A stretch of DNA of 64,000 bases from Mobula hypostoma (GCF_963921235.1 NC_086124.1:24056001-24120000), one strand, 5' to 3'. Numbered from the stretch's first letter, positions 1,819-49,410 are shown. Notes: generated from the sequence alone by a model not told the origin. Translations and numbers: made by a program.

Positions 1819-2099
1819 CGAGTGAGACGGTCAGCCCTTCCTCAAGGCTGACGTGTGCTGCCCGCAGCTGAATGTGGCCCCGTCCTTTGGCTTGATCCCA
1901 ATGTATTTGTAGACGTTGAAGGTCCAGTCTGGCTCTACCACCAGCTGCGATGATCGGACAGGCCCGGTGAACGGCTGCCCATTGATCAGGAAGCTGAGCT
2001 CGATCTCGAAAGGGTAGAAGTTGTCAGCATAACACTACAGGGTGTTCGACCTCTGTGGAGCATAGTCGTCTTCTGTGTAGATGTGGATGGTGGGTTTCT
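1819..2099 (-). pseudogene. MHC W-category-like alpha-chain alpha2 exon (beta2-microglobulin-like C1-set Ig domain), disabled
   Basis: Acceptor ttccag|AG at 2099 and donor G|gtatg at 1819, both phase 1. Translation KPTIHIYTEDDYAPQRSNTL*CYADNFYPFEIELSFLINGQPFTGPVRSSQLVVEPDWTFNVYKYIGIKPKDGATFSC/RAAHVSLEEGLTVSL. It has both Ig cysteines, FYP, no C-strand Trp (FLING, like beta2m LLKNG) and DWTF (beta2m DWSF). There is a TAG at 2035-2037, and the exon is 281 bp, one short of 282, with the frameshift near 1862. Confidence 0.85.
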
Positions 2100-2260
2100 C
2101 TGGAACACAGAGCAAAGGTCACCGTGAACAGGTCAAAGGTAAATGTACATGTGGAAAGGTCAGCGTGAACGGGGCAAAAGTAACTGTGAATGGCCACAGG
2201 TTTGTTCTGAACACAACCAAACCTGTCCCTGAAATTCTGGGCAAACCAAGCGTAAGAGGC

Positions 2261-2891
2261 AGGAGGAGAAGATGCAGCGCACCGCGTGTGCGCAGCCCTC
2301 CAGTGAAAATGATGTTGTATCCATTAAATAGGGGCCGTGGACAATTCTGATTTGATAGAGAATGGACGTGAAAGCACAGAGCAACATCTGGAGAAATTTC
2401 TGAAACACCCGTTCGCTGCTGTCGTTACTGTGTGGTCGTGAATCTTTCTGAGGGTAGGCCTCAAAATCCCCGGCCTTGCCTGCTTTTGGCAACCGAGAAG
2501 GAGGTCGAATCGTTCGGACAGAGATGGCGCTCAGTACTCGGTGTTGGAGAGCTGATCAGAGCTCGAAGTTTTCGGATGACTCAGAGTCGGACTGTGGTTG
2601 GCATGGCAGCAAGAGTTTATCTTCCTTCTCCCATCTGTGTGAGACGTGGGACATTTGAGAAACTTTGAACTTTACTGTGCTCACGGACTTCTTCATCAAG
2701 TTATGGTATTGTTACACTGTTTGTAACTATATGTTATAATTATGTGGTTTTGTCAGTTTTTTCAGTCTTGGTTTGTCCTGTGTTTTTGTGACATCACACC
2801 GGAGGAAACAATGTATCATTTCTTAATGCATGCATTACTAAATGACAATAAAAGAGGACTACATGTCTTCATAGTCATAATCATAATCATA
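2261..2891 (+). mobile_element. About 630-bp non-coding retroposon (LINE-UTR-derived), copy 1 of 3
   Basis: Starts ggagaagatg(g)c..., ends aataaaagaggact...(ATCATA)n. Near-identical reverse copies lie at 35479-36135 and 42671-43241. Confidence 0.75.
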
Positions 2892-2964
2892 AGAGGACCT
2901 CAAAGCTTCAGAGAAGGGATATGTAATCAATCAGTATCAATAAAATATGACTATGACTATGACT

Positions 2965-3145
2965 AAAGGTTTAGTGAAAGGGCAAAGATCAGGGATATGG
3001 AAAGGTTTAGCGAAAGGGCAAAGATCACGGATATGGAAAGGATTAGTGAAAGGGAAAAGATCAGGGATATGGAACGGTTTAGCGAATGGGCAAACATCAG
3101 GGATATGGAAAGGATTAGTGAAAGGGCAAAGATCAGGCAGATATA
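2965..3145. repeat. 36-bp minisatellite, about 5 copies (AAAGGTTTAGTGAAAGGGCAAAGATCAGGGATATGG)
   Basis: Units start at 2965, 3001, 3037, 3073 and 3109. Confidence 0.9.
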
Positions 3146-3379
3146 CGAAAAGGACAGAAGTGCAGCTAGTAGAGCCACTGCCTCATCCAGCTGACAGAGC
3201 CAGAAGATGTGGTAGAGGACGGTTCTATTGGACTGAAAGACAATTAGACAGGTACATAGATAGGCAAGATGCATTGGACAAATGCAGCTGAAGGGGTCTA
3301 GTTCAGTTCAGAATGGATCATGAGAAGGTTTGAAATGTTTATAAAATTGAAATATTCACAAATATTCATAAACCAAAGT

Positions 3380-3885
3380 GCTGAGTTGTATGAGATGCTG
3401 TTGAGGCCTAATTTGGAGCATTGTGTTCATTTCTGGTCACCTTTCTTCAGGAATGATATCAATAAGATTGAAAGAGTGCAGAGAAAATTTACAAGGACTT
3501 GAGGACCTGAGTTATTGGGAAAAGATGAACAGGTTAGGACTTTACTCCCCGGAGTGTAGGAGAATGAAGGTAGATTTGATCGAGATAAACAAAATTATGA
3601 GGGGTGTAGAGAAGCTAAACGCGAGCAGGTTTTTTCCGCTGAGGTCGGGCGAGACTGGAACTCGAGTTCGTGAGTTGAGAGTTAAGGGTGAAGTGAAAGG
3701 GAACCTCAGAGGTGTTGAGAATGTGGAACGAGCTGCCATCGGAAGTGGTGGTTGTAACTTTGATTTCAAAATGTAAGAGATGCACCTGGATGGGAGGGGC
3801 ACGGAGGGCGATGGCCTGGGCGCACGTCGATTGGATGATAGTTCAGCAAGGGCTAGATGAGCCGAAGGTCCTCTTTCTGTGCGCT
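3380..3885 (+). mobile_element. CR1 LINE ORF2 3' fragment
   Basis: LLRPNLEHCVHFWSP...IERVQRKFTR...RLGLYSPECRRMKVDLIE, the CR1 C-terminal motif set. Confidence 0.85.
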
Positions 3886-3907
3886 ATGACTCTTCGCGGT
3901 GACTCAC

Positions 3908-4180
3908 TTTTCGGGACGCTCGAACCGTTAGTGAACTTCATCATCTCCTTGGTGATGCCCTGCTGCCAGGCCTGGATCCCGCTCGACCTCTCCTTGAAGT
4001 GGTTCACCTCATCTTGGCCGAGGTCCTTTACCCCGTCTGTCTCAATTCCCTTGATGAAGAACGTCTGGCGCTGGTAATCGTAGAAGAGAAAGGGAGAGGT
4101 GTTCGTGTCGAAGATGTGGCCGTTGGTTTTGGAACTCGGACTGTAGCTGTAATACAACCTTTCAGAGATGCTTTTAAACA
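3908..4180 (-). CDS. MHC W-category-like alpha-chain alpha1 exon (open; part of a probably disabled gene)
   Basis: Acceptor tttgttccaag|TG at 4180 and donor A|gtgagt at 3908. 273 bp, phase 1-1, no stops: FKSISERLYYSYSPSSKTNGHIFDTNTSPFLFYDYQRQTFFIKGIETDGVKDLGQDEVNHFKERSSGIQAWQQGITKEMMKFTNGSSVPK. Length, a beta-strand-then-helix pattern and a terminal NGS sequon fit a class-II-type alpha1, and it splices in frame to the alpha2 exon. Confidence 0.75.
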
Positions 4181-4284
4181 CTTGGAACAAAGTGAGAAAG
4201 AAGTTAGATATATGCCCACCCTTTCCTCGACCACGTCCAAAATAAATAAATTATCAAAGTACATCTACAATCAATGACCATGTT

Positions 4285-4695: not shown

Positions 4696-4704
4696 CCGAA
4701 ATGT

Positions 4705-5132: not shown

Positions 5133-5289
5133 AGAGCGCTTTCCAGAGGGGAGTGTCTGCAATGAGTTTTCCTGCCCACTTCTTCATCCTGGACACGCAC
5201 AAGTTCTGCAGTGATGGTAGACTACAGCCAATGCAGGGCACTGCCCTCGTAGTTCGCTGTAGTTTTTGTCTACTGTGCGAGGATACATT

Positions 5290-5728: not shown

Positions 5729-7838
5729 TTTTAAAGATTGCATGGATGAACTACAACAATTGTTCATCCCAGTTTGGCAAAAGAATAAATCAAGGAAGGT
5801 AGTGCACCCGTGGCTGACAAGAGAAATTAGGGATAGTATCAATTCCAAAGAAGAAGCATACAAATTAGCCAGAAAAAGTGGCTCACCTGAGGACTGGGAG
5901 AAATTCAGAGTTCAGCAGAGGAGGACAAAGGGCTTAATTAGGAAGGGGAAAAAAGATTATGAGAGAAAACTGGCAGGGAACATAAAAACGGATTGTAAAA
6001 GCTTTTATAGATATGTAAAAAGGAAAAGACTGGTAAAGACAAATGTAGGTCCCCTACAGACAGAAACAGGTGAATTGATTATGGGGAGCAAGGACATGGC
6101 AGACCAATTGAATACTTACTTTGGTTCTGTTTTCACTAAGGAGGACATAAACAATCTTCCAGAAATAGTAGGGGACAGAGGGTCCACTGAGATGCAGGAA
6201 CTGAGCGAAATACGTGTTAGTAGGGAAGTGGTGTTAGGTAAATTGAAGGAATTAAAGGCAGATAAATCCCCAGGGCCAGATGGTCTGCATCCCAGGGTGC
6301 TTAAGGAAGTAGCCCAAGAAATAGTGGATGCATTAGTGATAATTTTTCAAAACTCGTTAGATTCTGGACTAGTTCCTGAGGATTGGAGGGTGGCTAATGT
6401 AACCCCACTTTTTAAAAAAGGAGGGAGAGAGAAACCGGGGAATTATAGACCGGTTAGCCTAACGTCGGTGGTGGGGAAATTGCTGGAGTCAGTTATCAAA
6501 GATATGATAACAGCACATTTGGAAAGCAGTGAAATCATTGGCCAAAGTCAGCATGGATTTGTGAAAGGAAAATCATGTCTGACGAATCTCATAGAATTTT
6601 TTGAGGATGTAACTAGTAGAGTGGATAGGGGAGAACCAGTGGATGTGGTATATTTGGATTTTCAAAAGGCTTTTGACAAGGTCCCACGCAGGAGATCAGT
6701 GTGCAAACTTAAAGCACATGGTATTGGGAGTAAGGTATTGATGAGGATAGAGAATTGGTTAGCAGACAGGAGGCAAAGAGTGGGAATAAACGGGACCTTT
6801 TCAGAATGGCAGGCAGTGACTAGTGGGGTACCGCAAGGCTCAGTGCTGGGACCCCAGTTGTTTACAATATATATTAATGTCTTGGATGAGGGAATTAAAT
6901 GCAGCATCTCCAAGTTTGCGGATGACACAAAGCTGGGCGGCAGTGTTAGCAGTGAGGAGGATGCTAAGAGGATGCAGGGTGACTTGGATAGGTTGGGTGA
7001 GTGGGCAAATTCATGGCAGATGCAATTTAATGTGGATAAATGTGAAGTTATCCACTTTGGTGGCAAAAATAGGAAAACAGATTATTATCTGAATGGTGGC
7101 CGATTAGGAAAAGGGGAGGTGCAACGAGACCTGGGTGTCATTATACACCAGTCATTGAAAGTGGGCATGCAGGTACAGCAGGCGGTGAAAAAGGCGAATG
7201 GTATGCTGGCATTTATAGCAAGAGGATTCGAGTACAGGAGCAGGGAGGTACTACTGCAGTTGTACAAGGCCTTGGTGAGACCACACCTGGAGTATTGTGT
7301 GCAGTTTTGGTCCCCTAATCTGAGGAAAGACATCCTTGCCATAGAGGGAGTACAAAGAAGGTTCACCAGATTGATTCCTGGGATGGTAGGACTTTCATAT
7401 GAAGAAAGACTGGATGAACTAGGCTTGTACTCGTTGGAATTTAGAAGATTGAGGGGGGATCTGATTGAAACATATAAAATCCTAAAGGGATTGGACAGGC
7501 TAGATGCAGGAAGATTGTTCCCGATGTTGGGGAAGTCCAGAACGAGGGGTCCCGGTTTGAGGATAAAGGCGAAGCCTTTTAGGACTGAGATTACGAAAAA
7601 CCTCTTCACACAGGGAGTGGTGAATCTGTGGAATTCTCTGCCACAGGAAACAGTTCATTGGCTATGTTTAAGAGGGAGTTAGATATGGCCCTTGTAGCTA
7701 GGGGGATCAGAGGGTATGGAGGGAAGGCCGGTGCAGGGTTCTGAGTTGGATGATCAGCCATGATCATAATAAATGGCAGTGCAGGCTCGAAGGGCCGAAT
7801 GGCCTACTCCTGCACCTATTTTCTATGTTTCTATGTTT
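5729..7838 (+). mobile_element. CR1 LINE, 5'-truncated, with a 646-codon open ORF2 segment (RT domain)
   Basis: [48 protein letters not shown]; (TTCTATGT)n tail at about 7820-7838. Confidence 0.95.
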
Positions 7839-7839
7839 T

Positions 7840-11517: not shown

Positions 11518-11534
11518 GATCAATAACAATATTT

Positions 11535-12344: not shown

Positions 12345-15300
12345 ACTGCCCCGCTCTAACCCCCCAGCCCCGCGACAGTCACCGGGCTCTCACTGCCCCG
12401 CTCTCTCCCCGCAGCCCCGCGACAGTCACCGGGCTCTCACTGCCCCGCGTTCTCCCCTCAGCCCCGCGTCAGTCACCGGGCTCTCACTGCCCCGCGTTCT
12501 CCCCCCAGCCCCGCGTCAGTCACCGGGCTCTCACTGCCCCGCTCTCTCCCCTCAGCCCCGTGTCAATCACCGGGCTCTCACTGCCCCGCGTTCTCCCTTC
12601 AGCCCCGCGTCAGTCACCGGGCTCTCACTGCCCGCGTTCTCCCCCCAGCTCCGTGTCAGTCACCGGGCTCTCACTGCCCCGCTCTCTCCCCTCAGCCCCG
12701 TGTCAATCACCGGGCTCTCACTGCCCCGCGTTATCCCTTCAGCCCCGCGTCAGTCACCGGGCTCTCACTGCCCCGCGTTCTCCCCCCAGCCCCGTGTCAG
12801 TCACCGGGCTCTCACTGCCCCGCTCTCTCCCCTCAGCCCCGTGTCAGTCACCGGGCTCTCACTGCCCCGCGTTCTCCCCCCAGCCCCGCGTCAGTCACCG
12901 GGCTCTCACTGCCCCGCTCTCACCCCTCAGCCCCGTGTCAGTCACCGGGCACTCACTGCCCCACACTCTCCCCTCAGCCCCGTGTCAGTCACCGGGCTCT
13001 CACTGCCCCGCGTTCTCCCCCCAGCCCCGTGTCAGTCACCGGGCTCTCAGTGCCCCGCGTTCTCCTCTCAGCCCCGTGTCAGTCACCGGGTACTCACTGC
13101 CCCGCGTTCTCCCCGCAGCCCCGCGTCAGTCACCGGGCTCTCACTGCCCCGCTCTCTCCCCTCAGCCCCGTATCAGTCACCGGGCTCTCACTGCCCCGCT
13201 CTCTCCCCTCAGCCCCGTGTCAATCACCGGGCTCTCACTGCCCCGCGTTCTCCATTCAGCCCCGCGTCAGTCACCGGGCTCTCACTGCCCCGCGTTCTCC
13301 CCCCAGCCCCGCGTCAGTCACCGGGCTCTCACTGCCCCGCTCTCTCCCCTCAGCCCCGTGTCAGTCACCGGGCTCTCACTGCCCCGCTCTCTCCCCTCAG
13401 CCCCGCGTCAGTCACCGGGCTCTCACTGCCCCGCGTTCTCCCCCCAGCCCCGCGTCAGTCACCGGGCTCTCACTGCCCCGCTCTCTCCCCTCAGCCCCGT
13501 GTCAGTCACCAGGCTCTCACGGCCCCGCGTTCTCCCCCCAGTCCCGTGTCAGTCACCGGGCTCTCACTGCCCCGCGTTCTCCTCTCAGCCCCGTGTCAGT
13601 CACCGGGTTCTCACTGCCCCGCGTTCTCCCCGCAGCCCCGCGTCAGTCACCGGGCTCTAACTGCCCCGCTCTCTCCCCTCAGCCCCGTGTCAGTCACCGG
13701 GCTCTCACTGCCCCGCGTTCTCCCCCCAGCCCCGTGTCAGTCACCGGGCTCTCTCTGCCCCGCTCTCTCCCCTCAGCCCCGTGTCAGTCACCGGGCTCTC
13801 ACTGCCCCGCCTTCTCCCCCCAGCCCCGCGTCAGTCACCGGGCTCTCACTGCCCCGCGTTCTCCCCCCAGCCCCGTGTCAGTCACCGGGCTCTCACTGCC
13901 CCGCTCTCTCCCCTCAGCCCCGTGTGAGTCACCGGGCTCTCACTGCCCCGCTCTCTCCCCTCAGCCTCGTGTCAGTCACCGGGCTCTCACTGCCCCGCGT
14001 TCTCCCCCCAGCCCCGTGTCAGTCACCGGGCTCTCACTGCCCGCGTTCTCCTCTCAGCCCCGTGTCAGTCACCGGGCTCTCACTGCCCCGCGTTCTCCCC
14101 GCAGCCCCGCGTCAGTCACCGGGCTCTCACTGCCCCGCTCTCTCCCCTCAGCCCCGTGTCAGTCACCGGGCTCTCACTGCCCCGCGTTCTCCCCCCAGCC
14201 CCGTGTCAGTCACCGGGCTCTCACTGCCCCGCTCTCTCCCCTCAGCCCCGTGTCAGTCACCGGGCTCTCACTGCCCCGCTCTCTCCCCTCAGCCTCGTGT
14301 CAGTCACCGGGCTCTCACTGCCCCGCGTTCTCCCCCCAGCCCCGTGTCAGTCACCGGGCTCTCTCTGCCACGCTCTCTCCCCTCAGCCCCGTGTCAGTCA
14401 CCGGGCTCTCACTGCCCCGCGTTCTCCCCCCAGCCCCGCGTCAGTCACCGGGCTCTCACTGCCCCGCGTTCTCCCCCCAGTCCCGTGTCAGTCACCGGGC
14501 TCTCACTGCCCCGCTCTCTCCCCGCAGCCCCGTGTCAGTCACCGGGCTCTCACTGCCCTGCTCTCTCCCCTCAGCCCCGTGTCAGTCACCGGGCTCTCAC
14601 TGCCCCGCGTTCTCCCCCCAGCCCCGTGTCAGTCACCGGGCTCTCACTGCCCCGCTCTCTCCCCTCAGCCCCGTGTCAGTCACCGGGCTCTCACTGCCCC
14701 GCGTTCTCCCCCCAGCCGCGCGTCAGTCACCGGGCTCTCACTGCCCCGCGTTCTCCCCCCAGCCCCGTGTCAGTCACCGGGCTCTCACTGCCCCGCGTTC
14801 TCCCCCCAGACCCGTGTCAGTCACCGGGCTCTCACTGCCCCGCGTTCTCCCCCCAGCCCCGTGTCAGTCACCGGGCTCTCACTGCCCCGCGTTCTCCCTT
14901 CAGCCCCGCGTCAGTCACCGGGCTCTCACTGCCCCGCGTTCTCCCCTCAGCCCCGTGTCAGTCACCGGGCTCTCACTGCCCCGCGTTCTCCCCTCAGCCC
15001 CGCTTCAGTCACCGGGCTCTCACTGCCCCGCGTTCTCCCCCCAGCCCCGTGTCAGTCACCGGGCTCTCACTGCCCCGCGTTCTCCCCCCAGCCCCGCGTC
15101 AGTCACCGGGCTCTCACTGCTCCGCGTTCTCCCCTCAGCCCCGTGTCAGTCACCGGGCTCTCACTGCCCCGCGTTCTCCCCCCAGCCCCGTGTCAGTCAC
15201 CGGGCTCTCACTGCCCCGCCTTCTCCCCCCAGCCCCGTGTCAGTCACCGGGCTCTCACTGCCCCGCGTTCTCCCTTCAGCCCCGTGTCAGTCACCGGGCT

Positions 15301-18300
15301 CTCACTGCCCCGCGTTCTCCCTTCAGCCCCGCGTCAGTCACCGGGCTCTCACTGCCCCGCGTTCTCCCCCCAGCCCCGTGTCAGTCACCGGGCTCTCACT
15401 GCCCCGCGTTCTCCCTTCAGCCCCGTGTCAGTCACCGGGCTCTCACTGCCCCGCGTTCTCCCCTCAGCCCCGTGTCAGTCACCGGGCTCCCACTGCCCCG
15501 CGTTCTCCCCCAAGCCCCGCGTCAGTCACCGGGCTCTCACTGCCCCGCGTCCCCCCCCGCAGCTCCGCGTCAGTCACCGGGCTCTCACTGCCCCGCGTTC
15601 TCCCCTCAGCCCCGTGTCAGTCACCGGGCTCTCACTGCCCCGCTCTCACCCCTCAGCCCCGCGTTAGTCACCGGGCTCTCACTGCCCGCGTTCTCCCCCC
15701 AGCCCCGTGTCAGTCACCGGGCTCTCAGTGCCCCGTGTTCTCCTCTCAGCCCCGTGTCAGTCACCGGGCTCTCACTGCCCCGCGTTCTCCCCCCAGCCCC
15801 GTGTCAGTCACCGGGCTCTCACTGCCCCGCTTTCTCCCCTCAGCCCCGTGTCAGTCACCGGGCTCTCACTGCCCCGCTCTCTCCCCTCAGCCCCGCGTCA
15901 GTCACCGGGCTCTAACTGCCCCGCGTTCTCCCCCCAGCCCCGTGTCAGTCACCGGGCTCTCACTGCCCCGCTCTCTCCCCTCAGCCCCGTGTCAGTCACC
16001 GGGCTCTCACTGCCCCGCTCTCTCCCCTCAGCCCCGTGTCAGTCACCGGGCTCTCACTGCCCCGCGTTCTCCCCCCAGCCCCGTGTCAGTCACCGGGCTC
16101 TCACTGCCCCGCTCTCTCCCCTCAGCCCCGTGTCAGTCACCGGGCTCTCACTGCCCCGCGTTCTCCCCCCAGCCCCGTGTCAGTCACCGGGCTCTCACTG
16201 CCCCGCGTTCTCCCCCCAGACCCGTGTCAGTCACCGGGCTCTCACTGCCCCGCGTTCTCCCCCCAGCCCCGTGTCAGTCACCGGGCTCTCACTGCCCCGC
16301 GTTCTCCCTTCAGCCCCGCGTCAGTCACCGGGCTCTCACTGCCCCGCGTTCTCCCCTCAGCCCCGTGTCAGTCACCGGGCTCTCACTGCCCCGCGTTCTC
16401 CCCTCAGCCCCGCGTCAGTCACCGGGCTCTCACTGCCCCGCGTTCTCCCCCCAGCCCCGTGTCAGTCACCGGGCTCTCACTGCCCCGCGTTCTCCCCCCA
16501 GCCCCGCGTCAGTCACCGGGCTCTCACTGCTCCGCGTTCTCCCCTCAGCCCCGTGTCAGTCACCGGGCTCTCACTGCCCCGCGTTCTCCCCCCAGCCCCG
16601 TGTCAGTCACCGGGCTCTCACTGCCCCGCGTTCTCCCTTCAGCCCCGAGTCAGTCACCGGGCTCTCACTGCCCCGCGTTCTCCCTTCAGCCCCGCGTCAG
16701 TCACCGGGCTCTCACTGCCCCGCGTTCTCCCCTCAGCCCCGTGTCAGTCACCGGGCTCTCACTGCCCCGCGTTCTCCCCCCAGCCCCGTGTCAGTCACCG
16801 GGCTCTCACTGCCCCGCTCTCTCCCCTCAGCCCCGTGTCAGTCACCGGGCTCTCACTGCCCCGCGTTCTCCCCCCAGCCCCGCGTCAGTCACCGGGCTCT
16901 CACTGCCCCGCGTTCTCCCCCCAGCCCCGTGTCAGTCACCGGGCTCTCACTGCCCCGCGTTCTCCCCCCAGCCCCGTGTCAGTCACCGGGCTCTCACTGC
17001 CCCGCGTTCTCCCCTCAGCCCCGTGTCAGTCACCGGGCTCTCACTGCCCCGCGTTCTCCCTTCAGCCCCGCGTCAGTCACCGGGCTCTCACTGCCCCGCG
17101 TCCCCCCCCCCCAGCCCCGTATCAGTCACCGGGCTCTCACTGCCCCGCTCTCTCCCCTCAGCCCCGTGTCAGTCACCGGGCTCTCACTGCCCCGCTCTCT
17201 CCCCTCAGCCCCGTGTCAGTCACCGGGCTCTCACTGCCCCGCGTTCTCCCCCCAGCCCCGTGTCAGTCACCGGGCTCTCACTGCCCCGCTCTCTCCCCTC
17301 AGCCCCGTGTCAGTCACCGGGCTCTCACTGCCCCGCGTTCTCCCCCCAGCCGCGCGTCAGTCACCGGGCTCTCACTGCCCCGCGTTCACCCCCCCAGCCC
17401 CGTGTCAGTCACCGGGCTCTCACTGCCCCGCGTTCTCCCCCCAGACCCGTGTCAGTCACCGGGCTCTCACTGCCCCGCGTTCTCCCTTCAGCCCCGCGTC
17501 AGTCACCGGGCGCTCACTGCCCCGCGTTCTCCCCTCAGCCCCGTGTCAGTCACCGGGCTCTCACTGCCCCGCGTTCTCCCCTCAGCCCCGCGTCAGTCAC
17601 CGGGCTCTCACTGCCCCGCGTTCTCCCCCCAGCCCCGTGTCAGTCACCGGGCTCTCACTGCCCCGCGTTCTCCCCTCAGCCCCGTGTCAGTCACCGGGCT
17701 CTCACTGCCCCGCGTTCTCCCTTCAGCCCCGTGTCAGTCACCGGGCTCTCACTGCCCCGAGTTCTCCCTTCAGCCCCGCGTCAGTCACCGGGCTCTCACT
17801 GCCCCGCGTTCTCCCCCCAGCCCCGTGTCAGTCACCGGGCTCTCACTGCCCCGCGTTCTCCCCCCAGCCCCGTGTCAGTCACCGGGCTCTCACTGCCCCG
17901 CGTTCTCCCCTCAGCCCCGTGTCAGTCACCGGGCTCTCACTGCCCCGCGTTCTCCCCCCAGCCCCGCGTCAGTCACCGGGCTCTCACTGCCCCGCGTCCC
18001 CCCCCCACCCCAGCTCCGCGTCAGTCACCGGGCTCTCACTGCCCCGCGTTCTCCCCTCAGCCCCGTGTCAGTCACCGGGCTCTCACTGCCCCGCGTTCTC
18101 CCCTCAGCCCCGCGTCAGTCACCGGGCTCTCACTGCCCGCGTTCTCCCCCCAGCCCCGTGTCAGTCACCGGGCTCTCAGTGCCCCGCGTTCTCCTCTCAG
18201 CCCCGTGTCAGTCACCGGGCTCTCACTGCCCCGCGTTCTCCCCCCAGCCCCGTGTCAGTCACCGGGCTCTCACTGCCCCGCTTTCTCCCCTCAGCCCCGT

Positions 18301-21300
18301 GTCAGTCACCGGGCTCTCACTGCCCCGCTCTCTCCCCTCAGCCCCGCGTCAGTCACCGGGCTCTCACTGCCCCGCGTTCTCCCCCCAGCCCCGTGTCAGT
18401 CACCGGGCTCTCACTGCCCCGCTCTCTCCCCTCAGCCCCGTGTCAGTCACCGGGCTCTGACTGCCCCGCGTTCTCCCCCCAGCCCCGTGTCAGTCACCGG
18501 GCTCTCACTGCCCCGCTCTCTCCCCTCAGCCCCGTGTCAGTCACCGGGCTCTCACTGCCCCGCGTTCTCCCCCCAGCCCCGTGTCAGTCACCGGGCTCTC
18601 AGTGCCCCGCGTTCTCCTCTCAGCCCCGTGTCAGTCACCGGGCTCTCACTGCCCCGCGTTCTCCCTTCAGCCCCGCGTCAGTCACCGGGCTCTCACTGCC
18701 CCGCGTTCTCCCCCCAGCCCCGTATCAGTCACCGGGCTCTCACTGCCCCGCTCTCTCCCCTCAGCCCCGTGTCAGTCACCGGGCTCTCACTGCCCCGCGT
18801 TCTCCCCCCAGCCGCGCGTCAGTCACCGGGCTCTCACTGCCCCGCGTTCTCCCCCCAGCCCCGTGTCAGTCACCGGGCTCTCACTGCCCCGCGTTCTCCC
18901 CCCAGACCCGTGTCAGTCACCGGGCTCTCACTGCCCCGCGTTCTCCCCCCAGCCCCGTGTCAGTCACCGGGCTCTCACTGCCCCGCGTTCTCCCTTCAGC
19001 CCCGCGTCAGTCACCGGGCTCTCACTGCCCCGCGTTCTCCCCTCAGCCCCGTGTCAGTCACCGGGCTCTCACTGCCCCGCGTTCTCCCCTCAGCCCCGGG
19101 TCAGTCACCGGGCTCTCACTGCCCCGCGTTCTCCCCCCAGCCCCGTGTCAGTCACCGGGCTCTCACTGCCCCGCGTTCTCCCCCCAGCCCGCGTCAGTCA
19201 CCGGGCTCTCACTGCTCCGCGTTCTCCCCTCAGCCCCGTGTCAGTCACCGGGCTCTCACTGCCCCGCGTTCTCCCCCCAGCCCCGTGTCAGTCACCGGGC
19301 TCTCACTGCCCCGCGTTCTCCCTTCAGCCCCGTGTCAGTCACCGGGCTCTCACTGCCCCGCGTTCTCCCTTCAGCCCCGCGTCAGTCACCGGGCTCTCAC
19401 TGCCCCGCGTTCTCCCCCCAGCCCCGTGTCAGTCACCGGGCTCTCACTGCCCCGCGTTCTCCCTTCAGCCCCGTGTCAGTCACCGGGCTCTCACTGCCCC
19501 GCGTTCTCCCCTCAGCCCCGTGTCAGTCACCGGGCTCTCACTGCCCCGCGTTCTCCCTTCAGCCCCGCGTCAGTCACCGGGCTCTCACTGCCCCGCGTTC
19601 TCCCTTCAGCCCCGCGTCAGTCACCGGGCTCTCACTGCCCCGCGTTCTCCCCTCAGCCCCGTGTCAGTCACCGGGCTCTCACTGCCCCGCGTTCTCCCCT
19701 CAGCCCCGCGTCAGTCACCGGGCTCTCACTGCCCCGCGTTCTCCCCCCAGCCCCGTGTCAGTCACCGGGCTCTCACTGCCCCGCGTTCTCCCCCCAGCCC
19801 GCGTCAGTCACCGGGCTCTCACTGCTCCGCGTTCTCCCCTCAGCCCCGTGTCAGTCACCGGGCTCTCACTGCCCCGCGTTCTCCCCCCAGCCCCGTGTCA
19901 GTCACCGGGCTCTCACTGCCCCGCGTTCTCCCTTCAGCCCCGTGTCAGTCACCGGGCTCTCACTGCCCCGCGTTCTCCCCCCAGCCCCGTGTCAGTCACC
20001 GGGCTCTCACTGCCCCGCGTTCTCCCTTCAGCCCCGTGTCAGTCACCGGGCTCTCACTGCCCCGCGTTCTCCCCCCAGCCCCGTGTCAGTCACCGGGCTC
20101 TCACTGCCCCGCGTTCTCCCTTCAGCCCCGCGTCAGTCACCGGGCTCTCACTGCCCCGCGTTCTCCCCTCAGCCCCGTGTCAGTCACCGGGCTCTCACTG
20201 CCCCGCGTTCTCCCCTCAGCCCCGCGTCAGTCACCGGGCTCTCACTGCCCCGCGTTCTCCCCCCAGCCCCGTGTCAGTCACCGGGCTCTCACTGCCCCGC
20301 GTTCTCCCCCCAGCCCGCGTCAGTCACCGGGCTCTCACTGCTCCGCGTTCTCCCCTCAGCCCCGTGTCAGTCACCGGGCTCTCACTGCCCCGCGTTCTCC
20401 CTTCAGCCCCGTGTCAGTCACCGGGCTCTCACTGCCCCGCGTTCTCCCTTCAGCCCCGCGTCAGTCACCGGGCTCTCACTGCCCCGCGTTCTCCCTTCAG
20501 CCCCGTGTCAGTCACCGGGCTCTCACTGCCCCGCGTTCTCCCTTCAGCCCCGTGTCAGTCACCGGGCTCTCACTGCCCCGCGTTCTCCCCTCAGCCCCGT
20601 GTCAGTCACCGGGCTCTCACTGCCCCGCGTTCTCCCTTCAGCCCCGCGTCAGTCACCGGGCTCTCACTGCCCCGCGTTCTCCCTTCAGCCCCGCGTCAGT
20701 CACCGGGCTCTCACTGCCCCGCGTTCCCCTTCAGCCCCGTATCAGTCACCGGGCTCTCACTGCCCCGCTCTCTCCCCTCAGCCCCGTGTCAGTCACCGGG
20801 CTCTCACTGCCCCGCTCTCTCCCCTCAGCCCCGTGTCAGTCACCGGGCTCTCACTGCCCCGCTCTCTCCCCCCAGCCCCGTGTCAGTCACCGGGCTCTCA
20901 CTGCCCCGCTCTCTCCCCTCAGCCCCGTGTCAGTCACCGGGCTCTCACTGCCCCGCGTTCTCCCCCCAGCCGCGCGTCAGTCACCGGGCTCTCACTGCCC
21001 CGCGTTCTCCCTCCAGCCCCGTGTCAGTCACCGGGCTCTCACTGCCCCGCGTTCTCCCCCCAGACCCGTGTCAGTCACTGGGCTCTCACTGCCCCGCGTT
21101 CTCCCCCCAGCCCCGTGTCAGTCACCGGGCTCTCACTGCCCCGCGTTCTCCCTTCAGCCCCGCGTCAGTCACCGGGCTCTCACTGCCCCGCGTTCTCCCC
21201 TCAGCCCCGCGTCAGTCACCGGGCTCTCACTGCCCCGCGTTCTCCCCTCAGCCCCGCGTCAGTCACCGGGCTCTCACTGCCCCGCGTTCTCCCCCCAGCC

Positions 21301-35478: not shown

Positions 35479-36135
35479 AGATTATGAGGACACGCAGTCC
35501 TCTTTTATTGTCATTTAGTAATGCATGCATTAAGAAATGATACAATGTTCCTCCAGTGTGATATCACAGAAAAACAAGACAGATCAAGACTGAAAAACTG
35601 ACAAAAACCACATAATTATAACGTATAGTTACAACAGTGCAAGTAATACCGCAATTTAATAGAAGAACAGACCATGGGCACGGTAAGAAAAGTCTCAAGA
35701 TCTCTCGAAAGCCCCAACATCTCATGCAGACGGTAGAAGGAAGAAAACTCTCCCTGCCATGAGCTTCCAGCGCCACAAACTTGCTGATGCAGCACCCTGG
35801 AAGCACCCGACGACAGTCCGTCTGAAAACTTCGAGCCTCCAGCCAGCCCTCCGACACCAAGCACCGAGCACCATCTCTGCCGAGCGCTTCGACCCCAGCC
35901 CCGACCTCCAGCAACAGGTAAAGCCGAAGATTTGGGGCCTTCCCTCTGGAGATTCTCGATCACACAGTAGCAGCGGCAGCAAACCAGGCATTTCGGAAGT
36001 TCTCCAGATGTTTCTCCGTGCTTTTCACGTCCTTCTCCATCACATCAGGATTGTGCACGGCCTCTATTTAACAAATACAATATCATTTCACCAGGGAGGC
36101 CGCACGCGCTGCATCGCGCCGCCATCTTCTCCTCC
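35479..36135 (-). mobile_element. About 650-bp non-coding retroposon, copy 2
   Basis: Reverse-complement homologue of 2261-2891; 5' end ggagaagatggcggcgcgatgcagcgc. Confidence 0.75.
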
Positions 36136-38749: not shown

Positions 38750-40268
38750 AAGCTTGTAACTCCTCCAGAGTTGTCATAGATCTCTTGGTGGCGTCCCTCA
38801 CTCATCCCCTTCTTGCATTGTCATCCAAAATTCTTATGTGCTTCCTCCTACATCAACTCATTAGCCACATGTTAAGCTGTATAAAATTCCTTTTAATATG
38901 ACACACCAAATCATCACTGGTGCAGCCAATTAGTCTTAGAAGTCACGTAATTTGTTTTCTGTTTTTGGAGACCTGTGTGCAGTCAGGGTGTTTCAATTGA
39001 TAGCAGTAAAAATACATCTATATCTGGGAGGTCCAACTGCTCGTGAACCAGTGTCCAGGTAAAAACTACACCATGAAACAAAAGAACTCTCCAAGCAGCT
39101 CCGCCAAAAGCACAAGTCAGGAGATGGATACAAGAAAATTTTCAAGTCACTGAATATCCCTTGGAGTGCAGTTGTTGATCATCAAGAAATGGAGAAAATA
39201 TGGCACAGCTGTAAATCTGCCCAGAACAGGCCGTCCTCAAAAACTGATTGACCATGCAAGAAGGGGACGAGTAAGGGAGGCCACCAAGAGATCTACAACA
39301 ACTCTGGACGAGTTACAAGCTTTAGTGGCTGAGATGGGAGAGACTGCGCTTACAACAACTGTTACCGGGTGCTTCACCAGTCATAGCTTTATGGGAGAGT
39401 GGCAAAGAGAAATCCACTGTTGAAAAAAACTCACATGAAACCTTGGCTAGAACTTGCCAGAAGGCATGTGGGAGACTCTGAAGTCATCTGGAAGAAGGTT
39501 CTATGGTCTGATGAATCCAAAAGTGAGCTTTTTGGCTATCAGACTAAACACTGTGCTTGGCATAAGCCAAACACTGAACATCCTCAAAAACACACCATCC
39601 CTCCTGTGAAGCATGCTGTGGGGATGCTTCACTGCAGCAGGCCCTGGAAGGCCTGTGAAGGTAGAGGGTAAAATGAATGCAGCAAAATACAGGGAAATCA
39701 TGGAGGAAAACCTGATTCATTCTGCAAGAGAAGTACGACCTGGGAGAAAATTTGTTTTCCAGCAAGACAATGACTCCAAGCATAAAGCCAAAGTTACAAA
39801 GGAGTGGCTTAAAAACAACAAAGTTAATGTCCTGAAGTGGCCAAGTCAGAGTCCAGCCCTCAATCCAATTGAGAATTTGCGGCTGGGCTTGAAAAGAGTT
39901 GTTCACTCACTACTCCCGTGCAATCTGACAGAGCTTGAACAGTTTTGTAAAGGAGAATGGGGAAAATTTGCAGTATCCAGATGTGCAAAGCTGATAGAGA
40001 CCTATCCACACAGACTCAAGGCTGTAAATGCTGCCAAAGATGCATCTACTAAATACTGACTTGAAGGGGGTAAATACTTATGCAATCAATTATTTTGTGT
40101 TTTATGTTTGTGATTAATTTGGATCACTTTGTTGAGATACGTTTTCACTTTGACACGAAAGAGTTATTTTCTGTTGATCGGTATAAAAAAGCCAAATTAA
40201 ATCCACTGTGTTTTAATAGAAAATGAAACTTCTGCGGGGGTGGGGTACGAATACTCTTTATGGCACTG
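38750..40268 (+). mobile_element. Tc1/mariner transposon with a frameshifted transposase
   Basis: LPRTGRPQKL, KKVLWSDESK, FVFQQDNDSKH, WPSQSPALNPIENL; right TIR ggggtacgaatactctttatggcactg followed by TA. Confidence 0.9.
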
Positions 40269-40511: not shown

Positions 40512-40761
40512 CATGTACAGTTCAGAGTCAGAACATTCTGGTAAACACTCCCTGCAATGAAAGGGACGAAGGCTTGGTACGGTTGACTTCAATGACAGCC
40601 CGGGGGTTGCAGTGGTTCAGGTCTCTGATGAAAGCTTCCAAAAGTGAAACGCTGGCCCCAAATTTACTCGCAGATAAAACAAAGTAGGTGACATCTTTGC
40701 TGTTATAACCAAGTCACAGGTCCGTTCTCGAGAACCACGGAGCTGTGCTGGAGTAGATTGT
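40512..40761 (-). pseudogene. MHC class-II-type/W-category beta1 exon relic
   Basis: Phase-1 acceptor cagttag|AC. Frameshift-joined translation DNLLQHSSVVLENGPVT/GYNSKDVTYFVLSASKFGASVSLLEAFIRDLNHCNPRAVIEVNRTK/AFVPFIAGSVYQNVLTLNCT. The middle segment aligns without gaps to the class II beta1 pattern YNxEExxxFxxxxxxFxAxxxLxxxxxxxxN. The donor is degenerate, so the end coordinate is approximate. Confidence 0.6.
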
Positions 40762-41184
40762 CTAACTGATGTGCATTCCAGATAAACACAAATTAGAAGG
40801 ATAGTTTAACAGTCAAAGCCATTCTGAGTTGGGAATGAGTTACTTAAGACAAGGTGATTTCTATCTCCAAAGTTGCAGATTGCATCTATCAGTTACAGTT
40901 TCAATCTCTTTCCTCTCATGTTAGACATCACAACATCAATGCCTCAACAAGCTCTATAGAACCATACAGCATAGAAACAGGCCCTTCAGCCCAACTGGTC
41001 CATGCTGGCCAAGATTCACATCCAAACCAATACTACTTGTCCACATTTGGCACACCTCATTTACCCTGTTTGCACTCCCTGCCTTCCCCTCTTCTCCCTC
41101 TCCCCCCACCTTGAAATCTTTCTTATCCATATATCTTTCAAATGCTGCTGTCCTGCCTGCCTCAGTCAATTCCCCTCGTAGTTT

Positions 41185-43815
41185 GTGGGATTATGATGTT
41201 TGTGGCCATGACAGAGACTTGGCTGGCACCAGGGCAGGAATGGATTCTCGATATTCCTGGATTTCAGTGCTTTAAAAGGGATAGAGAGGGGGGAAATAGG
41301 GAAGGAGGGGTGGCATTACTGGTCAGGAATACTATTACAGCTACAGAAAGGGTGAGTAATGTAGCAGGATCCTCTTTTGAGTCAGTATGGGTTGAAGTCA
41401 GGAACAGGAAGGGAGCAGTTACTCTATTGGGGGTATTCTATAGGCCCCCTGGTAGCAGCAGAGATACAGAGGAGCAGATTGGGAGGCAGATTTTGGAAAG
41501 GTGCAAAAATAACAGGGTTGTTATAATGGGTGACTTTAACTTCCTTAATATTGATTGGCACCTGATGGTTTATACGGGGCAGAGTTTGTTAAGTGTGTCC
41601 AGGATGGATTCCTATCACAGTATGTTGACAGGTCGACGAGAGGGAATGCCATATTAGATCTAGTATTAGGTAACGAATCGGGTAAGGTCACAGATCTCTC
41701 AGTGGGTGAATATCTGGGGGATAGTAACCACCGCTCCCTGGCCTTTAGCATTATCATAGAAAAGGATAAAATCAGAACGGACAGGAAAATTTTTAATTGG
41801 GGAAGGGCAAATTATGAGGCTATAAGGCTAGAACTTGCGGGTGTGAATTGGGATGATGTTTTTGCAGGGAAATATACTACGGATATGTATAGGGATGTTT
41901 AGGGATCTTTTGCGGGATGTTAGGGATAAATTTGTCCCGGTGAGGAAGATAAAAAATGGTAGGGTGAGGGAACCATGGGTGACAAGTGAGGTGGAAAATT
42001 TAGTCAGGTGGAAGAAGGCAGCATACATGAGGTTTAGGAAGCAAGGATCAAATGGGTCTATTGAGGAATATAGGGTAGCAAGAAAGGAGCTTAAGAAGGG
42101 GCTGAGAAGAGCAAGAAGGGGGCATGAGAAGGCCTTAGTGAGTAGGGTAAAGGAAAACCCTAAGGCATTCTTCAATTATGTGCAGGACAAAAGGATGACA
42201 GGAGTGAAGGTGGGACCGATTAGAGATAAAGGTGGGAAGATGTGCCTGGAGGCTGTGGAAGTGAGTGATGTCCTCAATGAATACTTCTCTTCGGTATTCA
42301 CCAATGAGAGGGAACTTGATGACAGTGACGACAATATGAGTGAGGTCGATGTTCTGGAGCATGTTGATATTAAGGGAGAGGAAGTGTTGGAGTTTAAAAT
42401 ACATTAGGACAGATAAGTTCCCGGGGCCTGACAGAATATTCCCCAGGCTGCTCCTCGAGACGAGGAAAGAGATTGCTGAGTCTGGCTAGGATCTTTATGT
42501 CCTCGTTGTCCATGGGAATGGTACCGGAGGATTGGAGGGAGGCGAATGTTGTCCTCTTGTTCAAAAAAGGTAGTAGAGATAGTCCGGGTAATTATAGACC
42601 AGTGAGCCTTACGTCTGTGGTGGGAAAGCTATTGGAAAAGATTCTTAGAGATAGGATCTATGGGCATTTATGGATTAGATTATGAAGACACGCAGTCCTC
42701 TTTTATTGTCATTTAGTAATGCATGCATTAAGAAATGAGACAATATTTCCTTCGGTGTGATATCACAAAACACAGGACAGACCAAGACTGAAAAAACTGA
42801 CAAAACCACATAATTATAACATACAGTTACAACACTGCAACAATACCATAACTGATGAAGAAGTCCATGAGCACAGTAAAAGTTCAAAGTCTCTCAAATG
42901 TCCCACATCTCACACAGACGGGAGAAGGAAGAACTCTCCCTGCCATGCCGACCACAGTCCGATTCTGAGTCATCCGAAAACTTCAAGCTCTGATCAGCTC
43001 TCCGACACCGAGTACTGAGCGCCATCTCTGTCCGAACGATTCGACCTCAATCTTGGTCGCCAACAGCAGGCAAAGCTGGGGATTTTGAGGCCTACCCTCC
43101 GAAAGGTTCCCAACCACGCAGTAACGACAGCAGCGAACGAGTGTTTCAGAAATTTCTCCAGATGTTCCTCTGTGCTTTCACGTCCATTCTCCATCAAATC
43201 AGAATTGTCCACGGCCCCCATTTAACGGATATGATATCATTTAGAGTTCTTTGAGGAGGTGACCAGGCATATAGATGAGGGTAGTACTTGGAGTACTGTG
43301 TCCAGTTCTGGTCGGCTCACTATAGGAAGGATGTGGAAACATTGGAAAGGGTACAGAGGAGATTTACCAGGATGCTGCCTGGTTTAGAGACTATGGATTA
43401 TGATCAGAGATTAAGGGAGCTAGGGCTTTTCTCTTTGAAGAGAAGGAGGATGAGAGGAGACATGATAGAAGTATACAAGATATTAAAAGGAATAGATAGA
43501 GTGGATAGCCAGTGCCTCTTCCCCAGGGCACCACTGCTCCATACAAGAGGACATGGCTTTAAGGTAAGGGGTGGGAAGTTCAAGGAGGAAATTAGAGGAA
43601 GGTTTTTTACTCAGAGAGTGGTTGGTGCGTGGAATGCACTGCCTGAGTCAGTGATGGAGGCAGATACACTAGTGAAGTTTAAGAGACTACTAGACAGGTA
43701 TATGGAGGAATTTAAGGTGGGGGCTTATATGGGAGGCAGAGTTTGAGGGTCGGCACAACATTGTGGGCCGAAGGGCCTGTACTGTGCTGTACTATTCTAT
43801 GTTCTATGTTCTATA
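41185..43815 (+). mobile_element. CR1 LINE (endonuclease to 3' tail) with an internal RT deletion and a nested insertion
   Basis: VAMTETWL, GVFYRPP, IMGDFNF, NYRPVSLTS, EYCVQFWS, (TTCTATG)n tail. Confidence 0.92.
42671..43241 (-). mobile_element. Non-coding retroposon, copy 3 (5'-truncated)
   Basis: Reverse-complement homologue of about 2320-2891, inserted in the CR1. Confidence 0.78.
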
Positions 43816-46340: not shown

Positions 46341-46539
46341 GATCTGGGCCGACATTTACATGCCAGACGGCAACAAATTAATTAGCTTGTTTATTTCGGC
46401 TTTTTTCTCAAAGATGTGCTGGGTGCGCTCCGGCTACCGCTGCACACCTGCATGCTTCACGGCCCGGAGGCTGGGGACCACTGCCCTAGAACTGCCCATC
46501 ACTCGCCGGGCCTCATTAGGCATTTGTCAAATCCGCACT

Positions 46540-47810
46540 TGTAGTATTGTGAGCAGTTTTATCTGAGAATAGATGTGCTTGCGTTGGCGAGGGTTCAGAG
46601 GAGGTTCACAGGAAATGATCCTGGGAACGAAAGGGTTAACATGCGGACAGCATTTCACAGGTGAAGGGCAAGTAGTGTCAAGGAAGCAGGGTGTCAGTAG
46701 AAGGACTTAGATTGGGAGAATCGGCAAAGAAGTAGCGGATGGAACAGTGTCGGGAAGTGTATTTTGGCAGAAGGAATAAAGGCGTAGATTATTTTTCTGA
46801 ATGGGAGGAAATTCAGAACTCAGAAGTGCGAAGGGACTTGGGAGTACTTATGCAGGGTTCCCTGAAGGTTAATTTGCAGCTTGAGTCGGTGCTGAGGAAG
46901 GCAAATGCAACGTGAGCATTTGTTTTGAGAGGACTAGAACATAAAAGCAAGGACGTGATACTGAGGCTTTATAAGGTACTGGTGAGCCCTCACTTGAAGT
47001 ATTATGAGCAGTTTGGGGCCTCTTATCTAAGAAAAGATGTACCGGAATTAGAGAGGGCCCAGAGGAGGTTTATGAGAATGATCCCAGGAAGGAAAGTATT
47101 AACCGAGAGACAACACAAATCCGAGGTGCAAAGGGAATTGGAGGTCCTCGAACAGGATTCCCTAAAGGTTAATTTGCAGGTTGAGTCAGGAGTAAGGAAG
47201 GCAAATGCAGTGTTACCATTCTTTTCCAAGCGACTAGCATATAAAAGTAAGGATGTAATGCTGAGGCTTCATAAGAGATTGGTCTGATGCAGATTGAGTA
47301 CTGGAGAGGGTCCGAATGAGGTTAACGAGAATGATCCTGACAATGCAAGGGTTAACATATGATGAGCATTTGATGGCTCTGGGCCTGTACTTGGTGGAGT
47401 TTAGAAGAATAATGGGGTTGGGGGGTGGGGGTGTAAATCTCATTGAATCCTATCAAATACTGAAAAGCCTAGACAGAGTGGACGTGGAGACGATGTTTCC
47501 TCTCATGGGGGAGTCTAGGACCAGAGGACACAGTCTCAGAATAGAAGGACATCCCTTTAGAACAGAGATGAGAAGGAATTCCGTTAGGTAAGTCCCTGAA
47601 TTCATTGCCACAGACTGCTCTGGAGGCTACGTCACTGGGTATATTTAAAGATGAAGTTGATAGGTTCTTGATTATTAAGGGTGTCAAAGGTTACAGGGAG
47701 AAGGCAGAAATATGGGGTTGAGAGAATAATAAGTTAGCCATGAAATGCCAAAGCAGATTCAATAGGCCAAATGGACTAATTCTGCTCCTATAATTTACAA
47801 TCTTATGGTG
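46540..47810 (+). mobile_element. Cluster of CR1 3' fragments
   Basis: Repeated LRLYKVLVSPHLKY / LVEFRR / MGESRTRGHSLRIEG motifs. Confidence 0.8.
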
Positions 47811-47893
47811 ATCAGAATGGTCCAATTGGGCTGAAGGGCCCATATCTGTATTACTCCATGACTGATGTAGGAAGGGGAGATACTGGTCCTCAC

Positions 47894-47933
47894 CAGGTTA
47901 CAGCAGGATTCTCTACGGCAAAACAATCGTAAC
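47894..47933 (-). other. Candidate 40-bp micro-exon following the beta2 exon
   Basis: ttttcaactcattcag|GTTACGATTGTTTTGCCGTAGAGAATCCTGCTGTAACCTG|gtgagg; in phase 1 with the beta2 exon it reads GYDCFAVENPAVT. Confidence 0.4.
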
Positions 47934-48059
47934 CTGAATGAGTTGAAAATGTGAACCAAATCACCCAATCATGTGGCAGCAACTCAATGCATCAAAGCAT
48001 GCAGACAAGGCCAAGAGGTCCAGTTGTTGTTCAGACCAGAATCCGGGAAGATTCCAGGA

Positions 48060-48665
48060 AGCTCAAACAGCCTCAAGGCAAAGCAGATTAAAGATAAGGT
48101 AGGGGCCAATGATCGACTCCCTTTTGCCAATTAAAGTGTCGAGGAAGATTGAATCTGAGGCAACTGCTTGCCTTTTGATTGCAGGGATGGATTTCTCTGC
48201 TGTCAGAGGAGTTTGTGTGGTGCCTTTCACTCACTGTTGTTGGAGGGCAGGCCTCTGTGTTTGAGTGGTCTCTCTCTCTCTCTCGCTGTTGGTCAGAGGA
48301 TATTACCAAGGTTCTGAATTTATGGATTGGACTATGGACTTTTTCAGTCTTATGATTTTTATATTCTGTGTTTTCCCCTGTTCTTTAACCTTATTGTTGC
48401 ATAGCATGTTTTGTTAGTTTTTTGTGCAGGGGAGGGGGTATAGGTCTGAATGTTTTTGTTAGTTTTTTATGTGAGGGAGTGGGGTTTTGGGGGGTTGATG
48501 TTCTTGTTAAGTTTTGATTTTTTTTTGTGCAGTGGAGGTGGGGGGGGTTTGATGTTTATCTTTGAATGACTTCCATGGATTTCTTTTTTTCCTGGCTATC
48601 TGGAGAAGATGAATCTCAGAGTTGAATACTGAGTACATAGTTTGATAATAAATGAACCTTTTATT
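48060..48665 (+). mobile_element. LINE 3'-UTR-type interspersed repeat
   Basis: Terminal gaatctcagagttg...tttgataataaatgaacctt shared with 1-215. Confidence 0.45.
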
Positions 48666-48679
48666 GAATGATTGCTAAT

Positions 48680-49050
48680 GCATGACGGGGTGGTTTGAGT
48701 ATCTCAGAAATTGTTGAGTTCCCGGGATTTTCAGGCACAAGTCTCTGGAGTTTAAAGTGAACAGTGTGAAAAACAAAAAAAAATCATCTACTGAGTGGCA
48801 GTTGTGGGCGAAAGTGCCTTGTTAGTGTGATTTCAGAGGAGAATGGCCAGACTGGTTCCAGCTAACAGGAACGCAATAGTAACTCAAAGAACCGCCTGTT
48901 ACAATGGTAGTGTGCAGAAGAGCGTCAGTGAACGCAAACATTTCGAACCTTGAAGTGGATGAGCTGCAGCAGCATAAGACCACGACCTTACACTCAATGG
49001 TCACTTTATTATGTTGAGGAGGTGCCTAATAAAGTGGCCACTGAGTGTAT
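48680..49050 (+). mobile_element. Tc1-derived non-autonomous element fragment with TIR
   Basis: Ends cctaataaagtggccactgagtgta; same family as 50174-50644. Confidence 0.7.
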
Positions 49051-49128
49051 AATATAGTGTTTGACAGAGTGTGAACCAGATCGTCACCAGTACACTGGAC
49101 CCCAAATTATTCAGACTCTGAGCCTTAC

Positions 49129-49410
49129 CCCAAACTGCATGCAGCTTGTCAGGGACGCTCAAATGCTTGATTTCACAAGTGTAAGTGTCACCCTTCCTGG
49201 GGTCAATTTCGACCTGTCGGCTGACTTGGAACGTCCCATCCTGGTTGGGTAAAATTTTCGTCATTAGCACTTCCCGATCGATCACCACACCATTCCGCAG
49301 CCACGTTGCGTGGATTTTCTTGGGATAAGATCCATGCACTTGGCATGTCAGGGCCAAGGTATTCTCTCTGTTCCTCAGGTGTCTTGAGGTTATTGTGATC
49401 ATCGGCTTCG
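49129..49410 (-). CDS. MHC W-category-like beta2 / class-I-alpha3-like C1-set Ig exon (intact)
   Basis: Acceptor ctgtccactgcag|CG at 49410 and donor G|gtaagg at 49129. 282 bp, phase 1-1, open: AKPMITITSRHLRNRENTLALTCQVHGSYPKKIHATWLRNGVVIDREVLMTKILPNQDGTFQVSRQVEIDPRKGDTYTCEIKHLSVPDKLHAVW. It carries the class I alpha3 motif PNxDGTFQ (class II beta2 has NGDWTFQ). Confidence 0.88.

Follow-up and report, generated by a model that had tools for sequence, protein, structure and literature searches.

The window, a stretch of 64,000 nucleotides from the devil ray Mobula hypostoma (GCF_963921235.1, NC_086124.1:24056001-24120000), carries four exons for domains of the major histocompatibility complex (MHC). 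They encode parts of WA alpha and WB beta chains of the W-category, which was described in 2021 and proposed to connect class II with class I of the MHC (Okamura et al., PNAS 2021, PMC8713811). The window holds a further, mostly broken, member of this known family and not a new kind of locus. To our knowledge, very little is known about W-category genomics beyond a few sharks and teleosts. No paper on W-category genes of Mobula was found in the literature.

MHC-domain exons on the minus strand

The exons were located by a six-frame motif search, inspection of the DNA around the motifs and tblastn with relatives (Table 1). The motifs PTIHIY (2077-2094) and DWTF (1918-1929) lie in the alpha2 exon of WA and PNQDGTFQ (49226-49249) in the beta2 exon of WB, all on the minus strand. 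A first-pass annotation had proposed four MHC-domain exons on this strand between 1819 and 49410. All four were found where it placed them, and positions 1819 and 49410 are exact exon ends. Chance is excluded as the source of the four exon matches.

The first-pass annotation had also named an in-frame alpha1-alpha2 junction, a beta2-microglobulin (beta2m)-like alpha2 immunoglobulin (Ig) domain, a beta1-like relic and an Ig exon with the class I alpha3-type motif PNQDGTFQ. Each of these was recovered. The WA alpha1 exon precedes the alpha2 exon by 1.8 kb, and its donor and the alpha2 acceptor form a phase-1 junction with A|AG as the lysine codon. In addition to PTIHIY and DWTF, alpha2 has a C-strand (ELSFLING) with Phe and not Trp. 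The first-pass annotation had placed transposons between the exons, and such elements do occupy the gaps. Among them are reverse transcriptase and endonuclease of long interspersed nuclear elements (LINEs), a DDE transposase of Tc1 type and an open reading frame (ORF) with a gag-like SCAN domain.

No credible leader or transmembrane (TM) exon of WA or WB was detected in the window by tblastn, by full-length profiles or by BLAST with short queries. A fused leader at 4181-4214, suggested by a tblastn extension of alpha1, was rejected: the stretch is a polypyrimidine tract with a Phe/Leu-rich translation and no in-frame Met. Downstream of the WA alpha2 exon, the window extends only 1.8 kb. A minisatellite (983-1639; 31 bp, 21 copies, 87% matches) lies just downstream of alpha2, where an exon for connecting peptide, TM and cytoplasmic tail (CP/TM/CY) might be expected. 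At about 530-595 on the minus strand, HDLVGF...LPLFAT is similar to MDLVGFLMALLLPMAT, the WA leader of Hypanus and Mobula. The similarity is weak (E 1.8), and the stretch has ATGAC where ATGGAC is needed. It could be the leader relic of a further WA copy downstream and may be chance.

Table 1. Exons, exon remains and a repeated element in the window.
Feature	Coordinates	Strand	Properties
WA (WA_DS5-like) alpha1 exon	4180..3908	minus	273 nt, phase 1-1, open; acceptor AAG after pyrimidine tract, donor GTGAGT
WA alpha2 exon (beta2m-like C1-set)	2099..1819	minus	disabled; 281 nt; acceptor CAG, donor GTATGT
WB beta1 relic, orphan	about 40778..40519	minus	tblastn and profile match
WB (WB_DS1-like) beta2 Ig exon	49410..49129	minus	282 nt, phase 1-1, open; acceptor CAG, donor GTAAGG
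Intron read-through tail, RefSeq isoform X1 (XP_062891232.1)	49004..49128	minus	tblastn
Last coding exon, RefSeq isoform X3 (XP_062891235.1)	43240..43320	minus	tblastn, 100%
Last coding exon, RefSeq isoform X2 (XP_062891234.1)	35963..36065	minus	tblastn, 100%; repeat-derived
Repeated element, at least 320 nt	2307-2626 and 42923-43242	opposite orientation	91% complementary

Family assignment of the WA and WB exons

The open piece of alpha2 (67 amino acids) was compared with 1.8 billion representative proteins, with a best E of 3e-20. The top matches were chondrichthyan 'class II-like' proteins of ~250 amino acids (E 3e-20 to 8e-13). Proteins named WA by their depositors followed, from Ambystoma (BBO93651.1), Danio (BBO93978.1) and Protopterus (BBO93986.1). 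Lower ranks were taken by class II beta chains (~1e-7) and a beta2m-like protein (3e-4). Pfam placed alpha2 in the C1-set (E 9e-11). Using the skate match as the query recovered the full elasmobranch set, including BBJ00836.1 and BBJ00839.1 of Triakis scyllium ('MHC class II alpha chain like protein'). These two are probably the WA_DS5 of Okamura et al., because the alpha1 text of the window resembles the 'DS5 like' rows of their supplementary alignment. The nearest relative of both WA exons is the intact XP_072102696.1 of M. birostris, with 89% identity over 91 amino acids for alpha1 (tblastn E 4e-52) and 93% for alpha2, in which two breaks were read as X.

Diagnostic residues of WA alpha2 are Y8, L55, F/Y57, a beta2m-type W61 and the absence of the Ig-core Trp at position 37, which is F or L instead (PMC8713811). 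The alpha2 domain of the window carries Y8 (HIY), F37 (ELSFLING), L55 (SSQL) and W61 (EPDWTF). Position 57 is Val and not F/Y, as in each WA_DS5-like protein inspected, including Triakis BBJ00836.1. A sequence search of the PDB gave beta2m and class II beta2 domains as the best matches of alpha2, not class II alpha2. W-category proteins often bear wrong names in public databases, with WA chains labelled 'class II beta chain-like', 'DP alpha-1 chain-like' or 'Beta-2-microglobulin'. The zebrafish record BBO93980.1, titled WB_05, clusters with WA sequences at an identity of at least 90%.

By sequence, alpha1 had no match in Pfam, in a phmmer search of the PDB or in a comparison of a 22-sequence profile with the PDB. 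An AlphaFold2 model based on the WA alpha1 alignment had a mean predicted local distance difference test (pLDDT) of 84.7 and showed strands followed by one long helix. The first-pass annotation had made its reading depend on a structural match of alpha1 to MHC, and this match was found. All of the top 50 Foldseek matches in the PDB were groove domains of class I or class II, with probabilities up to 0.99 and TM-scores by query of 0.44-0.63. The E values were only 0.04-0.1, which is expected because alpha1 is a 90-residue half-domain. The modelled fold is taken as an MHC-type groove half-domain.

The beta2 exon retrieved ray proteins that RefSeq names 'class II ... beta chain-like' (E 8e-58). 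Its nearest paralogue in M. hypostoma, XP_062891132.1, is 91% identical and intact. Such intact Mobula paralogues consist of a leader, a beta1 of ~86 amino acids that exceeds the Pfam cut-off for MHC_II_beta, beta2 and a glycine-rich TM. Outside rays and skates, their next-best matches are class I heavy chains, before class II chains; the few class II chains among the matches listed are alpha-type. In the PDB sequence search, the best matches of the beta2 exon were alpha3 domains of class I and MR1. WB beta2 is characterised by P57 and G61, with W61 of class II beta2 absent (PMC8713811). The beta2 domain of the window has P57 and G61 (ILPNQDGTFQ) and no W61. The beta2 domain of a thorny skate protein of the same clade (P0096) equals the row 'little skate WB DS1 like 01' of Okamura Dataset S2 letter for letter over the part shown. 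Beta1 and TM of the Mobula proteins resemble the WB_DS1 rows as well. For these two reasons, the beta2 exon is assigned to the WB_DS1-like lineage.

The beta1 relic matched the WB beta1 of Mobula in tblastn (E 3e-4). Its first 55 codons reached 28 bits with a WB beta1 profile. The maximum of 1000 shuffles was 3.8, and none was as good. These codons can clearly be assigned to WB beta1 on their sequence.

A maximum-likelihood tree was calculated from 64 C1-set domains cut from the retrieved proteins. In the window alpha2, X stood for both the stop and the broken codon. The rows included 22 WA domains and one beta2m, and no sequence deposited under the name WB. The window alpha2 is located inside a chondrichthyan WA_DS5-like clade (100/98), as sister to M. 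birostris XP_072102696.1. All 22 WA rows are on one side of a branch (93/94), apart from class II alpha2 (99/89). The WA side comprises the depositor-named WA of Ambystoma, Danio and Protopterus and the Triakis 'class II alpha chain like' proteins. The window beta2 is inside a ray WB clade (100/99). WB (99/90) groups with class I alpha3 and two tapasin-like rows, labelled by eye, at 99/93, away from class II beta2. In approximately unbiased (AU) tests, a union of the window alpha2 with class II alpha2 (p 1e-4) and of the window beta2 with class II beta2 (p 1e-6) was rejected. The sole beta2m row was placed weakly with class II alpha2 (81/66), and the tree is silent on a sister relation of WA alpha2 and beta2m. 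The first-pass annotation had predicted that alpha2 groups with WA alpha2/beta2m and the exon at 49.1 kb with WB beta2/class I alpha3. The groupings with WA and with WB and class I alpha3 were obtained, and its W-category reading of a ray locus is upheld by tree, AU tests and diagnostic residues.

Lesions and RefSeq isoforms

The WA alpha2 exon is interrupted by a TAG at 2037-2035. This codon directly precedes that of the first Ig cysteine, at a position that is Tyr in 15 of 16 relatives. The exon is one nucleotide shorter than the expected 282. The deletion is located between 1864 and 1863, where the Arg codon after the second cysteine has lost a C (TGC|GGG). Beyond it, the alpha2 text realigns with M. 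birostris XP_072102696.1 residue for residue through AAHVSLEEGLTVSL. D74A, before the second cysteine, and E25D concern columns that are invariant in 16 WA_DS5-like proteins. Judged by its reading frame, the WA copy is a pseudogene. Alpha1 is nearly unaltered, with one change only at a near-invariant column, and the loss of WA is therefore probably recent.

The beta2 exon is already modelled in RefSeq, in X1 to X3 of a 'class II DR-1 beta chain-like' gene. The first-pass annotation had regarded the locus as hidden; this does not apply to the beta2 exon with its three public isoforms, and the locus is hidden at most in part. The isoforms, which are M. hypostoma proteins, match the beta2 exon and two exons downstream of it at 100% in tblastn, and the window is accordingly Mobula DNA and almost certainly from this species. 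Their gene layout is leader, beta1 and beta2. In all three, beta1 ends after DDLNLQSK, before the helix, and a CP/TM/CY exon is missing. The conserved-glycine TM of W-category beta chains is present in the intact paralogues and absent from X1-X3. The searches of the window yielded no TM exon either.

The three 3' ends differ and come from intron or transposon-derived sequence. In X1 the beta2 donor is passed over, and the unbroken match runs on until a stop codon at 49004. Residues 202-235 of X2 are encoded by a 34-residue terminal exon at 100% identity, preceded by the acceptor aaatag|. Residues 202-228 of X3 match at 100% as well and are antisense to a plus-strand LINE-type ORF (43288-43746). 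The terminal coding exon of X2 is supplied by a diverged copy of the repeated element. Tblastn of this tail also matched diverged copies of this element at 43117-43215 on the minus strand and 2334-2432 on the plus strand. One copy of the repeated element is located within the alpha1-alpha2 intron of WA.

M. birostris XP_072102720.1 ends in the same transposon-derived tail as X2, with 31 of 34 residues identical. The proper 3' end of WB was therefore probably lost before the split of M. hypostoma and M. birostris. In the GFYP motif of the window beta2, Phe is replaced by Ser, the sole Ser among the 64 C1-set domains (59 Phe, 3 Ile, 1 Leu). The WB gene to which the beta2 exon belongs seems to be truncated.

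The beta1 relic has TG where the acceptor is expected, and two stop codons (TAG 40764-40762 and TGA 40716-40714). Its length is about 2 nucleotides over. The helix half alone is non-significant in either frame, with 77 of 1000 shuffles equal to it; a frameshift in this half is only suggested. The relic lies downstream of the beta2 exon and is therefore part of another, otherwise lost, copy.

Arrangement, origin and meaning of the locus

WA (DS5-like) and WB (DS1-like) share one strand and are separated by 45 kb, in which LINEs, a Tc1-type element and a 12-kb satellite are located. No plus-strand WA or WB partner was found in the window; all matches are on the minus strand. WA and WB are described as close head-to-head pairs (PMC8713811). 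The white shark pairs are WA_DS5L/WB_Nds5L and WA_DS10L/WB_DS1L (Okamura et al. 2021, PMC8713811, SI). WA and WB of the window are cluster neighbours and not a cognate pair.

Batoid W-category sequences are already included in the supporting information of Okamura et al., with WA_DS5-like, WA_DS10-like and WB_DS1-like of the little skate (PMC8713811). The WA of the window shares with the WA_DS5 lineage the order of alpha1 and a beta2m-like alpha2, the phase-1 join and Y8, F37, L55 and W61. It differs as a pseudogene, with TAG, 1-nt deletion, D74A and E25D, and in the lack of a head-to-head WB partner. Full-length relatives have the structure alpha1-alpha2-TM. With beta2m, alpha2 has in common the missing C-strand Trp, DW(S/T)F and the N-terminal Tyr, and beta2m is among its best PDB sequence matches. 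Beta2m is a free single-domain gene. Alpha2, in contrast, forms the second exon of a class II-type chain with two domains, and its tree position is with WA and not with the beta2m row.

The WB of the window resembles the WB_DS1 lineage, that is, banded houndshark WB_DS1 and little skate WB_DS1-like, in P57, G61, the lack of W61, the grouping with class I alpha3 and the class II-type order of leader, beta1 and beta2. It deviates in isoforms without CP/TM/CY, a beta1 of which half is gone, the Ser in GFYP and the 3' ends from intron or transposon. Banded houndshark WB_DS1_n2 was named 'a possible pseudogene' and is known only from an odd fusion cDNA (Okamura SI, PMC8713811). It is likewise a WB_DS1-type copy with aberrant transcripts and no normal full-length product. 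Species and lesions are different, and orthology is not implied.

The surroundings are transposon-rich vertebrate DNA with a GC-rich satellite of 12 kb. The satellite (12345-24244) consists of about 252 copies of a 47-bp unit with 92% matches, ~70% GC and a strong strand skew. It yields giant spurious Pro/Ser-rich ORFs of up to 3392 amino acids on the plus strand and separates the WA pseudogene from the other parts of the cluster. Several LINE copies, at 5742-7682, 29.0-31.2 kb, 41.1-43.7 kb and 59.8-63.8 kb, contain domains for reverse transcriptase and endonuclease. They all run on the plus strand, and the MHC exons on the minus strand. The copy at 5742-7682 has an open ORF of 646 amino acids. 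Fragments of a Tc1/mariner-type transposase (39166-40059, plus strand; DDE_3, E 2e-11) are located directly downstream of the beta1 relic on the opposite strand. A run of long ORFs on the minus strand (52516-55445) includes a SCAN (gag-capsid-like) domain at 54371-54958 (E 9e-13). The adjoining ORFs of 301 and 168 amino acids had no Pfam match. This run is probably an LTR-type retroelement.

On the demonstrated exon anatomy, lesions, family assignment and RefSeq isoform structures, the window is very probably the decaying edge of an expanded WA/WB gene family in the devil ray. Birth-and-death turnover in a transposon-rich region would fit the locus. Read 5' to 3' on the minus strand, it would begin with the beta2 of a transcribed but truncated WB_DS1-like gene, followed by a dead beta1 and the WA_DS5-like pseudogene. 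The leader and the half-beta1 exon of the truncated gene would be situated past the window end. A membrane-bound W-category heterodimer would not be made from the window genes, and the working copies may be intact paralogues of WA and WB at other sites of this chromosome.

Several points weigh against this view. The TM exon of WA and the leader and beta1 exons of WB could sit just beyond the window ends. Both alpha2 lesions are seen in a single assembly and may stem from an error in it, or from a null allele if the gene is polymorphic. X1-X3 are computed models, and the transposon-derived tail shared with M. birostris could point to a retained product without TM and not to decay. The WB_DS1 label rests on a comparison by eye with the part of the Okamura alignment rows shown, and the tree had no WB-named deposit.

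A working W-category locus, implied in the first-pass annotation, would explain the alpha2 lesions by assembly errors or one null allele, and a WB membrane chain would use exons outside the window. The open alpha1, with its 89% identity to XP_072102696.1 and its one change at a near-invariant column, the open beta2 with good splice sites and the intact splice sites of alpha1 and alpha2 are in agreement with this. It is nevertheless very unlikely: a single exon of 281 nucleotides has two independent lesions in addition to replacements at invariant columns, a TM exon and a full beta1 are missing from each of X1-X3, and 49 kb downstream of beta2 lack a TM exon, with the WA pseudogene in that path. 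The WA pseudogene, the beta1 relic and the WB isoforms without TM speak against the implied function. The exons could also belong to ordinary class II A/B (classical or non-classical), class I or beta2m genes, as suggested by the RefSeq names 'class II ... chain-like', the UniProt name 'Beta-2-microglobulin' for some WA fragments and the PDB sequence matches (beta2m and class II beta for alpha2, class I alpha3 for beta2). Tree and AU tests contradict this. An alpha1 exon 1.8 kb upstream joins the beta2m-like exon in phase, which is at odds with beta2m. The gene using the beta2 exon has the layout leader-beta1-beta2, not that of class I, and F37 of alpha2 and G61 of beta2 stand against W37 of class II alpha2 and W61 of class II beta2. 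An origin from such ordinary genes is extremely improbable.

Retention of a WB beta variant without TM, secreted or intracellular, with a C-terminus acquired from a transposon before the split of M. hypostoma and M. birostris, is supported by the tail shared with XP_072102720.1 (31/34 identical) and a beta2 exon that is open in both species. Species this closely related would show such conservation under neutrality too, however, and three isoforms with three 3' ends are typical after the loss of a proper terminal exon. The beta1 helix half is absent, M. hypostoma has the Phe to Ser replacement in GFYP, and the M. birostris copy reads DRMFQ in place of DGTFQ of other WB, so that G61 is lost. 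Such a retained variant is quite unlikely. It is highly improbable that the TM-less WB transcripts encode a retained soluble W-category protein of beta-type (half-beta1 and beta2) with a C-terminus captured from a transposon before the species split. If true, this product would be the first soluble W-category member. The preferred reading of the window is the decaying edge of a WA/WB family.

The locus has no bearing on how class I and class II came to separate, and no new kind of molecule is added by it. For genome annotation, it is a warning: W-category genes go under the names 'class II-like' or 'beta-2-microglobulin', and part of their models are probably non-functional. The W family of the devil ray is large enough to shed copies, which fits the birth and death of a multigene family.

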